In this document: piece after piece, positions 16,645 to 23,002 of the stretch | Position numbering within the stretch: position 1 is the first letter of the stretch | Layout of the letters: the number at the start of each line of letters is the position of its first letter | Source of the DNA: Octopus sinensis | Lineage: Eukaryota | Reading direction: 5' to 3' | Assembly (NCBI RefSeq): GCF_006345805.1 | Contig: NC_043018.1 | Span: forward strand, 12,400,001 to 12,464,000 | DNA: 64,000 nucleotides | Translations under genes and position numbers: made by a program | The notes under the pieces: generated by a model | What the model was told of the DNA's origin: nothing | The model's database searches: none | Seen by the model: only the letters and a program-made list of their open reading frames with translations

Positions 16645-16862
16645 AGCGGTGTAATGTAAAGTTCCTGGCTTTGGCTAAAAGAAAATGCAGGGGACCCAGT
16701 TAGTTATGATTTTATTCAACGTATTCCCCTCCCAGATTCACACACGTATTGCAGTGGTCTTTCAGTTTTTCTAAGTCCTGTAAAAGAAGTCGGAAAGTGG
16801 GGCCTCCAACCAGGCCTTTCGCTTGCCCCTTAAAGCCAGGAACTTTTCAGCACCTCCTCGTA
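16645..16862. mobile_element. Mariner-derived MITE (TIR …GTGCTGAAAAGTTCCTGGCTTT)
   Basis: The right end AAAGCCAGGAACTTTTCAGCACCTCCTCGTA pairs with the degraded left end. A homologous, more intact copy is at ~53843-54062. Confidence 0.7.
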
Positions 16863-17922
16863 TGAGGTGGTCACTATATAAACGATGAAAGTGTCGGTTA
16901 TACATTTACAATTATAGAACTGGTTAAGTACCTAGACCTTAGATATCATGTTGCACTCACCGCCAGTCTTCTTTAACAAAAGTTCGTCTGGGGAACGTAA
17001 CGTACGGCTTATTACCTTGCGCGTCTATGCGAAAGCAGGGTATTGTAGCCGCGTGTCCTTGTCTGTTTGTCTGTGTGTTTGTAAAATTACTGGAAAATGG
17101 CTCAACTGAGTCTCCCCAAATTCTCCAGAAATATTCCTTGGGTGAGTGGCTCGTAATCATTAAATGTTGGTGTGGCGAATCAAAATGTTTGTTTTTTTTT
17201 TTTCTTTCTTTCTTACATATATATAAACGATAAGCAGGGGAAATAACTTTTGATGTCGATTTGTTGAAATAGGAATTCGTCTGAGATTATTGAATTAAAT
17301 TTTATTTTATCCTTGTGTGTGCGCAGAGTATATATCCCCCCTCCGATGCCGGTTTTTATTCTGTTTGTGACCTGTACATTCTCGGAAAATTTTTCACTAA
17401 AATAAGTTATTTTCTAGGGGAGGTCACTCCTGAATAATTTTACAGAGTTATCTTTCGTCATAATATGCAAGTTGATTAATGCTGAAAATATAAAATGTTT
17501 AAAAAAAGACAGAAATAAAAGAATAATTTTTTAAAAATTAAACGGGATTCATAAAATTGCATCAGGTTCTGTTTAATAATAGAGTCTCAATTCGATAGAC
17601 GTGAAGAAAGGAAAGGGTTACAGAATTGCACCGAAAAGGTGAAAAATAGGAAAAAAATAATAAATGAAGAAGAATTAAAAACAAAAGGAAAGAAAGAGGA
17701 AATTCTTTGACTTTGACGTTTGGAATTGGAATACTGCGTCTTATTTTGTTTTTATTTATTTTTCTGTTTGAATATTTGAAATGAAAAGATCCCTTTTCGC
17801 AAGCTGCTACAGTATATTTCTGTTTTTTTGTTCTCTCATTTAAAGAATCTAATTAAGCAGCGTCTGTTACACAATGTATTAAAAAGGAACAAAACGAGGT
17901 TGAATGTCTTTCGTTCGTTGTC

Positions 17923-18085
17923 TCATCCGGGACAGGGTTGCAAAGTCCCAGGAGTTGATGTATGACAGAGGCAGCGGCTTTTCCAAATCGTGTCGCAATG
18001 GCAGTCATAAGAAGGACAACAAGGAGGCGCGGCTTTACTTTTAGTTGGACTACAGCGATAATTCCAACCACTACACTTTAAGTGT
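17923..18085 (-). CDS. Cystine-knot (agatoxin-like) mature-peptide exon, distal copy A: HLKCSGWNYRCSPTKSKAAPPCCPSYDCHCDTIWKSRCLCHTSTPGTLQPCPG*
   Basis: Acceptor TTTCCATGTCCTTTATTTACAG, phase 2. C-x6-C-x10-CC-x4-CxC-x7-CxC-x10-C framework. TGA at 17925-17923 and AATAAA at 17751-17760. Confidence 0.85.
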
Positions 18086-20913
18086 CTGTAAATAAAGGAC
18101 ATGGAAAGCAAGAATAAACCATTTGTATTTAGCAATATGCTCCTATTTAACAACAAACTCGGAACTATTCACAGTTACTAAAGTTTGGGAACGAAATTCC
18201 ACAAACTGATCTGCATACTTCCTGACAAATTTTATGTACATGCATACATACACATGTATCTATATAATTGTACATGTGTACATAATGCATATCATACGTA
18301 CGTACGGACGGACGGGCGGACACATCTTGCTTCCGAAAACCCTTCAAGGCATTTCACACAATGCAATCCTGCAGAAAAATCTACAATATCATGGATTGAG
18401 AATACACTCACTCACTCACCTGAGCTTATTTTACCGTAAATTGTGATAAGTGCACCTGCACTCGTGTCAACGCCCTCACGCGACCACACGGGCTACCTCA
18501 TTCCTGCACAGCCCAGTCACTGACTGCACAGTTTTACACGCAAAGCAACACCGCTATTCAGATCTATCTGCATATAGAGAATTGTCCCATGTACACTTCA
18601 ATGATCCTCTCCCCTGATATGCGAAATATTCCCTCGGCCATGGCATTTCTTTTTCTTAGAAGCTCTCTGGAGGTGAAGTAATTTAGTGATTTCATATCGG
18701 CATAGAGCAGATTCTAACCTGAATCTGCCAATTTCCCTTAACATTGCCACGGCATTTTTTCTCACAGAAAAACGATAGTTGACAGCAGTTACATTCAACA
18801 CATGGCTTTGTCAAGTCGACTTGCGTATTTGCTGTTTAACTCTTGATCCTTTATAAGCCATCTAAAGTTGAAATTAGATAAGGGCGACCGACATCGACTG
18901 CCCATTGTTTTTCGCAATACATCTCTTTTTCTAGCTAGCCTGTATAGTTATAAAATCTAGAATTCCATAAGGTACGAGCAGTTAGTGAGAACTGACCAAC
19001 AGGGGAATTGACTGACTGGCTGAACGAAAGGCCGTCTCTGAATGAAAAGGCACAGAGGGACGACTAGGTAACTCACCAACGAAGCAGTTGTCTCGTCCCA
19101 CCACTCTCACTTTCTCTCAAGTTCATTTCTCTTCTCCACAACATCACTCTGTCACTATCTTTCGTTTACTAAGACAATGACGAGAACGTGTACACACTTA
19201 TACAAAAAGAAATTAGCTTTCTTAACCAAAGGTTTAGATGTTGCAACATACACTAACGTTTTAATTTCTTTAAGAAATATTGTATAATTCTATTTGATTA
19301 TTTATTAAAAATATGCATTTATTTAACTATTATTGTTATTATTGTTGACCTGAGGGGTGGCAATACTTTTAAATTGAATTCTTTGGGGATTAAATTTAAG
19401 TCTAATTGTAATTCGAATTGAAGTTATAGCCACGAAACGTACATAGTCTTTTTACTTATTATATAATTTATTCATTTTTTGTACTTTTTGTGATCTAGAT
19501 ATGTTTTATAATATATTTATTTTTTTTTCTATATGATATGGTTTATGTCTATCAGTGTTTGAAATACATAATAGTGGTTTTTTCTCTAACATATATATAT
19601 ATATATTATATATATATATATATGTAATTTTTGGATTTTTGCTCCTCTAAAATCGTCTTGGCATATAAGTTGCCCCACCCATTTTTTGTTGTTTTTTTTA
19701 CTTTTATACCAAGAGGTATGGTATGTGCTGCACACATGAAAATAAAATGTGCGTAGAACAGTAGAATTTTGCAAAGAAGTCGGAAAGTTGGTCCTCCAGC
19801 CAGGCCTTTCGCTTGCCCCTTAAAGCCAGGAACTTTTCAAGCACCTCCTCGTATGAGGTGGTCACTATATAAACGATGAAAGTGTCGGTTATAATTTACA
19901 ATTATAGAACTGGTTAAGTACCTAGACCTTAGATATCATGTTGCACTCACCGCCAGTCTTCTTTACAAAGTTCGTCTGGGGAACGTAACGTACGGCTTAT
20001 TACCTTGCGCGTCTATGCGAAAGCAGGGTATTGTAGCCGCGTGTCCTTGTCTGTTTGTCTGTGTGTTTGTAAAATTACTGGAAAATGGCTCAACTGAGTC
20101 TCCCCAAATTCTCCAGAAATGTTCATTGGGTAAGTGGCTCGAAATCATTAAATTTTGGTGTGGCGAATCAAAATGTTTGCTTTTTTTCTTTCTTTCTTAC
20201 ATATATATAAACGATAAGCAGGGGAAATAACTTTTGATGTCGATTTGTTGAAATAGGAATTCGTCTGAGATTATTGAATTAAATTTTATTTTATCCTTGT
20301 GTGTGCGCAGAGTATACATCCCCCCTACGATGCCGGTTTTTATTCTGTTTGTGACTTGAATATTCTCGGAAATTTTTCACTAAAATAAGTTATTTTCTAG
20401 GGAGGTCACTCCTGAATAATTTTACAGAGTTATCTTTCGTCATAATATGCAAGTTGATTAATGCTGAAAATATAAAATGTTTAAAAAAAGACAGAAAAAA
20501 AAAAAATAAAGAATAATGTTTAAAAATTAAACGGGATTCATAAAATTGCATCAGGTTCTGTTTAATAATAGAGTCTCAATTCGATAGACGTGAAGAAAGG
20601 AAAGGGTTACAGAATTGCACCGAAAAGGTGAAAAATAGGAAAAAAATAATAAATGAAGAAGAATTAAAAACAAAAGGAAAGAAAGAGGAAATTCTTTGAC
20701 TTTGACGTTTGGAATTGGAATACTGCGTCTTATTTTGTTTTTATTTATTTTTCTGTTTGAATATTTGAAATGAAAAGATCCCTTTTCGCAAGCTGCTACA
20801 GAATATTTCTGTTTTTTTGTTCTCTCATTTAAACAATCTAATTAAGCAGCGTCTGTTACACAATGTATTAAAAAAAGGAACAAAACGAGGTTGAATGTCT
20901 TTCGTTCGTTGTG

Positions 20914-21076
20914 TCAAAAGGGACAGGGTTGCAAAGGCAGAAAATTTGATGTATGACATCGGCAGTTGGATTTCCAAAACGCGTGGCAATGACAGTCATA
21001 AGAAGGACAACAAGGAGGCAAGTCTTTTCTTCCAGGTGGATCACAGCGATAATTCCAACGACCACACTTTAAGTGT
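20914..21076 (-). CDS. Cystine-knot (agatoxin-like) mature-peptide exon, proximal copy B: HLKCGRWNYRCDPPGRKDLPPCCPSYDCHCHAFWKSNCRCHTSNFLPLQPCPF*
   Basis: Identical acceptor and phase to copy A, same 163-nt length and Cys spacing. CxCxxxWxSNCRC resembles arthropod agatoxin-like peptides. AATAAA at 20740-20749. Confidence 0.87.
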
Positions 21077-21142
21077 CTGTAAATAAAGGACATGGAAAGC
21101 AAGAATAAACCATTTGTATTTAGCAATATGCTCCTATTTAAC

Positions 21143-22221: not shown

Positions 22222-22615
22222 AAACTTGTAACTATTCACAGTTACTAAAGTTTGGGAAAAAAATTCCACAAAATGATCTGCATACTTCCTGACAAATTTT
22301 AAGAAATATTGTATAATTCTATTTGATTATTTATTAAAAATATGCATTTATTTAACTATTATTGTTATTATTGTTGACCTGAGGGGTGACAATACTTTTA
22401 AATTGAATTCTTTGGGGATTAAATTTAAGTCTAATTGTAATTCGAATTGAAGTTATAGCCACGAAACGTACATAGTCTTTTTACTTATTATATAATATTT
22501 ATTCATTTTTTGTACTTTTTGTGATCTAGATATGTTTTATAATATATTTTATTTTTTCTATATGATATGGTTTATGTCTATCAGTGTTTGAAATACATAA
22601 TAGTGGTTTTTCTCT

Positions 22616-22654
<39 letters not shown>

Positions 22655-22660
22655 AGAGAG

Positions 22661-22700
<40 letters not shown>

Positions 22701-22947
22701 GAGAGTGAGAGAGTAAGGTCTATTTCACATGTAATTTTTGGATTTTTGGTCCTCTAAAATCGTCTTGGCATATAAGTTGCCCCAGCCATTTTTTTTGTTG
22801 TTTTTTTTTTACTTTTATGCCAAGAGGTATGGTATGTGCTGCACACATGAAAATAAAATGTGCGTAGAACAGTAGAATTTAACAAAAGTTTCAGAATAAT
22901 TATTTGAGCAATACACATCTAAAGCAATTGTAAGTATATAATTTTAC

Positions 22948-23002
22948 CTTTCTTCCAAACCTGTGTTTGCAACTTTTGGCGAATTATCGACTGTAGTGGC
23001 AT
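22948..23002 (-). CDS. Propeptide exon of the knottin precursor: (D)ATTVDNSPKVANTGLEE(R)
   Basis: Acceptor TTTTGTATCTCATTTCCAG and donor AG|GTAAAA. Phase 1 in and phase 2 out exactly match the neighbouring exons, giving …GLEER|HLKC. Confidence 0.8.

Follow-up and report, generated by a model that had tools for sequence, protein, structure and literature searches.

Duplication of a terminal mature-peptide exon behind a single leader in a putative CCWamide/ALP-family gene of Octopus sinensis

Can a peptide precursor gene gain a second product by copying only its last exon? This question is raised by a locus of Octopus sinensis that lies in a 64,000-nucleotide stretch of contig NC_043018.1 (NCBI RefSeq assembly GCF_006345805.1, positions 12,400,001 to 12,464,000 of the forward strand). 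We refer to this whole stretch as the window and number it from its first letter. The locus contains a gene for a small, cysteine-rich and predicted secreted peptide precursor, with four coding exons that are all on the minus strand. Its last exon is present in two tandem copies, B close to the leader and A farther away. A sequence-only reading had proposed that alternative last-exon splicing and polyadenylation could attach either of two mature ‘knottin’ toxins to the same leader. Our analysis leans, by a little more than even chances, towards a gene of the CCWamide/agatoxin-like peptide (ALP) family whose terminal exon was duplicated in a segment of ~2 kb after the split from Octopus bimaculoides, and which most likely works by alternative last-exon choice.

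The two terminal exons are equivalent in all elements needed for such a choice. The coding part of exon B, including its stop codon, spans 20914-21076 and encodes (R)HLKCGRWNYRCDPPGRKDLPPCCPSYDCHCHAFWKSNCRCHTSNFLPLQPCPF. The corresponding part of exon A spans 17923-18085 and encodes (R)HLKCSGWNYRCSPTKSKAAPPCCPSYDCHCDTIWKSRCLCHTSTPGTLQPCPG. Both exons are open, and in both the junction with the preceding exon reads LEE(R)/HLKC, with the Arg codon split AG/A in phase 2. The 66 nt upstream of acceptors A and B (...ttattcttgctttccatgtcctttatttacag/A) are identical, which bears out the earlier description of a common phase-2 acceptor. Each copy also has the stop codon and AATAAA signal ascribed to it before. 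Two overlapping AATAAA hexamers are found at 20740-20749, 165 and 169 nt past stop B, and two more at 17751-17760, 163 and 167 nt past stop A, again on the minus strand. The anatomy of alternative last exons is present: two terminal exons, each with an acceptor, a stop codon and a poly(A) signal, follow shared exons and one promoter.

The structure of the shared exons was set by orthology to the O. bimaculoides RefSeq protein XP_052831767.1 and its syntenic locus (L020, GCA_001194135.2). Synteny with this locus begins at the promoter and extends as far as a downstream importin-11-like gene without introns. Orthology indicated that the leader is composed of three exons, and not of two as first thought. 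Exon 1 contributes a 17-nt mini-exon at 25804-25820 (ATG ACT GAC TAT AAA AA/gtaagt), which carries the start codon and encodes MTDYK plus two nucleotides of an Asn codon. It is identical to exon 1 of XP_052831767.1 at 17 of 17 nt, and so is its donor. Exon 2, at 23584-23660, encodes the hydrophobic core of the signal peptide, VNKCTTKIILGVYFCTLSYAMSLNK. Exon 3, at 22948-23002, encodes the propeptide (D)ATTVDNSPKVANTGLEE(R) and is single-copy. It ends in phase 2 (...TTG GAA GAA AG/gtaaaa), and either mature exon supplies, as its first nucleotide, the A that finishes the Arg codon. The two predicted precursors have 103 residues each and start with MTDYKNVNKCTTKIILGVYFCTLSYAMSLNKDATTVDNSPKVANTGLEER; residues 1-50 are common to them, and 18 of the 53 mature residues differ. 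Sequence comparison identified a TATA-like box, TTATATAAAG, at 25910-25919 on the minus strand, ~90-99 nt upstream of the ATG and conserved with O. bimaculoides. The 95 nt upstream of the gene are nearly identical between the two species, and the TATA-like box is presumably the single promoter of the gene.

The codon at 23642-23644 in exon 2 (minus strand) is ACG, encoding Thr. In the O. bimaculoides ortholog and in a paralog at 21.43 Mb, this codon is the initiator Met of ‘MKIILG’. The first AUGs in exon 2 are out of frame or downstream of the signal core. Without the mini-exon the locus would look like a start-loss pseudogene. This interpretation was rejected because the upstream ATG mini-exon at 25820-25804 is conserved, and the RefSeq model of O. 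bimaculoides starts with it too. A hydrophobic ATG exon at 38570-38492 was considered as the signal exon and rejected as well, since the O. bimaculoides ortholog places the leader at 23660-23584. Searches of the window with tblastn found no second propeptide or signal exon, in agreement with the proposal that copy A has neither of its own. Besides this locus, the genome contains the leader exon at a single paralog, 9 Mb distant, and the only MKIILG-type leader outside this locus belongs to the gene at 21.43-21.44 Mb.

Self-BLAST of the window delimited a tandem duplication of ~3 kb on the minus strand, with one mature exon in each copy as previously suggested. The leader-proximal unit B (19773-22886) contains part of intron 3, mature exon B, the 3' untranslated region and the downstream flank. 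The distal unit A (16783-19775) has the same content without a leader exon. The two units align in four collinear blocks with identities of 94-98%. The longest block pairs A 16783-18151 with B 19773-21142, with 94.9% identity over 1380 nt (E=0). The others pair 18155-18234 with 22222-22301, 19269-19624 with 22298-22653, and 19622-19775 with 22729-22886. A global MAFFT alignment of A and B misaligned two unrelated insertions of ~1 kb, and it was discarded in favor of block-wise alignment. The duplication ends on the right at 22886, within a few nucleotides of the earlier estimate of ~22880, and stops 62 nt short of the propeptide exon, whose position was given correctly in that reading.

The units also carry different insertions, as had been recognized. 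B alone contains a LINE reverse-transcriptase fragment at 21143-22221 (RVT_1, E=7e-15), which is located on the plus strand, antisense to the gene, and 66 nt upstream of acceptor B. B alone also contains an intronic (GA)n microsatellite expansion at 22654-22728. The insertion specific to A, at 18319-19227, is a dispersed repeat with at least 399 candidate copies genome-wide, and it was gained after the duplication. Insertions aside, the original duplicated segment measures about 2 kb and is composed of the last ~660 nt of intron 3, the mature exon, the 3' untranslated region with its poly(A) signals, and ~1 kb beyond.

Additional repeats are found around the two cassettes. A dispersed repeat of ~350 bp, with at least 600 candidate copies genome-wide, is located in the 3' flank of both (19997-20352 and 17007-17362). 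It is also present at the matching position in O. bimaculoides and is therefore older than the duplication. Another repeat, of ~200 bp, occurs at 16650-16850 and 53854-54054. The left breakpoint of the duplication (16783) is inside the first of these, and unit B therefore opens with only the right-hand third of the repeat. Read by eye, the ~200 bp repeat seems to carry 15-nt terminal inverted repeats (AAAGTTCCTGGCTTT / AAAGCCAGGAACTTT), similar to a miniature inverted-repeat transposable element. No repeat common to both breakpoints of the duplication was seen, suggesting a non-homologous tandem duplication.

The sequence-only reading had also proposed to compare the number of cassettes in other species and haplotypes. 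In O. bimaculoides, a single mature exon is found at the syntenic locus, whose assembly is interrupted by runs of N. The flanks of both A and B, on the intron side and on the 3' side, map to the same O. bimaculoides positions. These observations indicate that the duplication postdates the split of the two lineages, and it appears to be young and lineage-specific. Of the 846 flank sites that could be aligned, 21 differ between A and B and 81-91 between each of them and O. bimaculoides, which places the duplication at about one quarter of the age of the species split. A genome search found no further full-length copy or haplotig of the locus in the O. sinensis assembly (2.72 Gb) besides A and B.

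The coding exons diverged far more than the sequence around them. A and B differ at 30 of 160 coding sites (18.8%, close to the 18% reported before), compared to 38 of 1784 flank sites (2.1%; Fisher p=3e-16). By the Nei-Gojobori method, the coding changes comprise 27.2 non-synonymous and 2.8 synonymous ones, or about 27 in 30, corresponding to a dN of 0.25 and a dS of 0.09, with a flank divergence of 0.021. The changes were polarized by parsimony with the O. bimaculoides exon as outgroup. In lineage A, derived changes were found at 15 of 153 coding and 15 of 846 flank sites (Fisher p=6e-6), an acceleration of ~5.5-fold. In lineage B, they were found at 6 of 153 coding and 5 of 846 flank sites (Fisher p=0.003), an acceleration of ~7-fold. 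Six further coding sites and one flank site were ambiguous. Separately, the derived flank changes are themselves uneven, 15 in A against 5 in B, a difference that is borderline by a rough binomial estimate (p about 0.04).

Both copies have retained the reading frame, the Trp and all nine Cys residues. In simulations, random substitutions retained the nine Cys and an open frame in 3.5% of the trials with 15 changes, 1.0% with 21 and 0.14% with 30. An exon that is never translated should drift at the rate of its flanks and lose cysteines. Exon A does neither, which suggests that it is translated and selected, and the data as a whole argue that A and B are both translated. If A is translated and has no leader of its own, it must splice to the shared leader. 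The prepro region shares 44 of 50 residues (88%) with the O. bimaculoides ortholog, and the mature region 28 of 51 (55%). Such a contrast is typical of peptides whose target is external or co-evolves with them, and not of a conserved neuropeptide.

The structure of the locus suggests how two products could be made. One TATA promoter and one three-exon leader would serve two equivalent terminal exons, B proximal and A distal. Splicing of exon 3 to B and cleavage at the B poly(A) site would produce precursor B. If instead the B acceptor is skipped and the B poly(A) site is read through, exon 3 would be spliced to A, ~3 kb onward, and produce precursor A. The connection from the shared propeptide exon to the A acceptor appears to be the only visible route by which A could reach a secreted product. 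We infer that both junctions are formed in RNA and that the resulting peptides are secreted, with targets that are external or co-evolve rapidly, unlike those of a conserved neuropeptide. The anatomy that the sequence-only reading gave for its alternative last-exon cassette is upheld, including the leaderless A, and the selection on both exons lends indirect support to the use of A. The ‘toxin’ label of that reading is an assumption, and the ‘knottin’ label was drawn from the cysteine framework.

Several observations weigh against two working cassettes. The kinetic order should favor exon B, and the use of A could be rare. A word-index protein search with the propeptide plus B as the query returned no product of the gene in this species. 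The RefSeq entry of O. bimaculoides lists one product only, and the gene family has no octopus precedent for alternative last exons. The runs of N at the O. bimaculoides locus, 159 nt and 1279 nt long, could conceal a copy. The contrast between non-synonymous and synonymous changes within the exon is not significant (Fisher p=0.20), with only ~32 synonymous sites, and the argument for selection therefore rests on the comparison with the flanks. The outgroup exon is 28-34% diverged, so that the polarization of coding sites by parsimony is noisy.

The most serious rival, which we regard as unlikely, is that A is a silent by-product of the duplication. Transcripts would then always end at the B poly(A) site, and A would be a pseudo-exon, either untranscribed or unspliced, that looks intact because of its youth. 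Since the splice and poly(A) signals of the two exons are identical and B comes first, transcription order should indeed favor B, and at a neutral divergence of 2% an open frame alone proves little. The pattern of changes in A is difficult to reconcile with this explanation. A is the copy with more changes, 15 of 153 coding sites against 15 of 846 in its flanks, and a neutral exon cannot exceed the rate of its flanks. Its 15-21 changes leave all nine Cys in place and create no stop codon (simulated p=0.035-0.010).

A rather less probable explanation is that the assembly placed two divergent haplotypes of a single hypervariable exon end to end, as A and B; this exon might be under balancing selection, and each chromosome would then have one cassette. 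A false haplotypic duplication would resemble a clean tandem repeat, a flank divergence of 2.1% with heterozygous transposable-element insertions is conceivable in a highly heterozygous marine invertebrate, and two copies are confirmed in no other species. On the other hand, the 64 kb window contains no N, and the two units join seamlessly at 19773-19775. The ~1 kb repeat insertions and the microsatellite state differ between the copies, the exons differ by 18.8%, and the assembly has no additional haplotig of the locus, although none of these points is decisive. It is very improbable that A is an independent gene with a promoter and leader of its own between B and A, for example in the insertion specific to A. 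That repeat, 1 kb in length, is located upstream of exon A at a distance of 150 nt, and promoters can originate from repeats. However, it is a dispersed repeat of an ordinary kind, present in hundreds of copies, and without a signal sequence a peptide would be neither secreted nor oxidatively folded. No signal-like or pro-like exon was found by tblastn in 18086-20913; the scan for ATG, hydrophobic and phase-1-donor exons covered only 23003-40000. Alternative last-exon choice from a shared leader appears to be the simplest way to reconcile a leaderless exon with the evidence of selection on A. It is partly supported by the data and well motivated, though unproven.

The affiliation of the peptides was examined by several searches. 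A profile of the octopus peptides was searched against 1.84 billion representative proteins, and the best matches were two O. bimaculoides proteins. A0A0L8G4S4 is named ‘Agouti domain-containing protein’ in UniRef, and its RefSeq twin is XP_052831767.1, uncharacterized protein LOC128250540. The only named relatives are O. bimaculoides proteins described as ‘uncharacterized’ or ‘Agouti domain-containing’. More distant matches without names (P0004, P0005 and P0007; E 7e-6 to 5e-4) end with ...NCRC.S..F-G-[KR], hallmarks of the family. The Agouti model of Pfam gave no match to the peptides even at E≤10, and the full precursor had no Pfam match at E≤0.01. The Toxin_7 family (PF05980) was matched below threshold, with 18.7 and 17.3 bits against a gathering cut-off of 27 (E 0.002 and 0.006). 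In the PDB, a sequence search returned only mu-hexatoxin-Mg2a (E=0.06). An AlphaFold2 model of moderate confidence (mean predicted local distance difference test score of 66, predicted template modeling score of 0.42) contains two short strands. Its top Foldseek match in the PDB was Magi3 (6ax2), with a non-significant E of 1.3 and a template modeling score of 0.43-0.48. A literature search found no description of the octopus peptide family.

The link to the CCWamide/ALP family appears stronger than these spider-toxin matches. Its members are made as short precursors whose last exon encodes the mature peptide, and they have eight conserved Cys, the sixth and seventh of which flank an aromatic residue (PMC8557429). 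Their genes usually have three coding exons, with a five-exon member reported, and a diagnostic intron between the second and third base of the basic codon at the cleavage site; no receptor is known for the neuropeptide relatives (PMC8557429). In decapods, ALP genes have two to four splice variants (PMC4888303). The octopus gene has the same layout in four coding exons, with the signal peptide in 25820-25804 and 23660-23584, the propeptide in 23002-22948 and the mature peptide in the last exon. The diagnostic intron is also present: the Arg codon is split AG/A (...GAA GAA AG/gtaaaa ... tttacag/A CAC) in both cassettes and in O. bimaculoides. C4, C11, C22, C23, C28, C30, C38, C40 and W34 are invariant in the alignments. 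An amidated aromatic C-terminus is absent. B ends with ...LQPCPF followed by a stop codon, with no Gly, and A ends with ...LQPCPG, which could give a Pro-amide at best. The relationship to CCWamide/agatoxin-like neuropeptides is one reason to regard the ‘toxin’ label as an assumption.

A and B have a C-terminal tail of 13 residues that contains the ninth Cys (...LQPCP...; codons 20923-20925 in B and 17932-17934 in A, minus strand). The O. bimaculoides ortholog (...LQGC) shares this Cys, and so does the paralog L003 (...LEGCRKRK). The odd number of Cys suggests a covalent dimer or a free thiol.

Our searches also revealed relatives of the gene elsewhere in the genome. At least five to eight related mature exons are found on the same chromosome, at 13.66, 13.74, 21.42 and 21.44 Mb (L003-L005 and L008-L019), and more with the same Cys framework are found at C13306:13091-13216 and C6:104751846-104751983. 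The locus belongs to a small, fast-evolving cluster of paralogs on its chromosome. Some of these paralogs are inverted neighbors. The L005 type and a relative at 21.416 Mb have a long hydrophobic C-terminal extension (...ICNYICISISLLSSFHL). The O. bimaculoides gene LOC128250511 (P0001, P0008 and P0009), ortholog of the paralog at 21.44 Mb, is represented in RefSeq by three isoforms. Their only differences are in the N-terminal extensions that precede ‘CRMKIILG’, which suggests alternative 5' exons. In O. bimaculoides, the family therefore shows variation at the 5' end and no annotated 3' alternatives.

Two features of the window lie outside the gene. An intronless open reading frame of 1033 residues at 10824-13925, on the minus strand, contains importin-beta/importin-11 domains (IBN_N, Xpo1, Cse1, CAS_CSE1 and TPR_IPO11). 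Its DNA identity to the O. bimaculoides locus is 95% over 4.2 kb, far above that of its surroundings, and it may be a retrogene copy of IPO11. At 46324-50567, an imperfect (AT)n array of 4.2 kb (77% matches) has a GC content of 8-13% and a strong skew of G over C.

If both junctions are used, the locus would be an unusually young and clean example of a peptide gene gaining a second product. The splice and poly(A) signals are identical and the flanks have diverged by 2%, yet the peptides already differ at about one third of their residues. The choice between last exons could then be studied directly as it arises, before the regulatory signals diverge, and the example would show that exon cassettes, in addition to whole-gene duplication, can enlarge peptide repertoires. 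The locus also points to a rapidly evolving peptide family in octopus, previously undescribed and apparently derived from CCWamide/ALP. A broader and more doubtful scenario is that octopuses turned a conserved CCWamide/ALP neuropeptide into a fast-evolving family of secreted, knottin-like peptides for venom, defense or chemical signals, paralleling the recruitment of U8-agatoxin in spiders. The locus would then capture the birth of a cassette, after which positive selection made both peptides diverge during a fraction of the period that separates the two species.

The octopus gene shares features with several known systems. Like CCWamide/ALP precursors of protostomes (Thiel et al. 2021, PMC8557429; Sturm et al. 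2016), the octopus precursors are short and start with a signal peptide; a non-conserved propeptide comes next, and the last exon encodes the mature peptide. In both, an intron interrupts a basic codon and the Cys pattern is C-C-CC-CxC-CxC. Unlike members of that family, the octopus peptides lack the amidated aromatic C-terminus and have a longer tail with a ninth Cys. In addition, the gene has an extra 5' coding mini-exon of 17 nt, its mature region evolves very fast, and its paralogs are clustered on one chromosome. The spider Toxin_7 family (PF05980), including mu-hexatoxin-Mg2a and Magi3 (PDB 6ax2), shares the CC...CxC...W.xNCRC motif and is the best and only match in Pfam, by PDB sequence and by Foldseek, with all matches below significance or curated thresholds. 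In the conotoxin genes of cone snails, the signal, pro and mature regions are encoded by separate exons, and diversity is attributed to whole-gene duplication. These genes likewise combine a conserved prepro region with a hypervariable mature exon that has an invariant Cys framework. They show no sequence relationship to the octopus peptides.

Tandem exon duplication was reportedly recognized as a source of alternative splicing by Kondrashov and Koonin in 2001 and by Letunic et al. in 2002. As in those cases, a single exon was doubled inside the octopus gene, creating homologous and potentially interchangeable protein segments. The classical examples are internal, mutually exclusive exons, whereas the octopus exon is terminal and has its own poly(A) site, so that selecting one copy or the other would link splicing with formation of the 3' end. 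Calcitonin/CGRP and CHH/ITP are known cases in which alternative last exons follow a shared peptide leader. In the arthropod CNMamide gene, either of the last two exons can be spliced to a common leader, and different peptides result (Veenstra 2016, PMC4888303). In all three systems, one promoter and leader precede two 3' exons, each with its own peptide, stop codon and poly(A) site, similar to the arrangement in octopus. Those systems are old and conserved and have been demonstrated at the RNA level; the alternative peptides that they produce are often unrelated or diverged long ago. By contrast, the octopus exons are young tandem duplicates with 2% flank divergence and identical signals, and are known from genomic sequence. 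The mechanism is of a known kind, alternative last exons arising through tandem exon duplication in a peptide-precursor gene, and the octopus locus would be a very young instance of it in an undescribed octopus branch of the CCWamide/ALP family.

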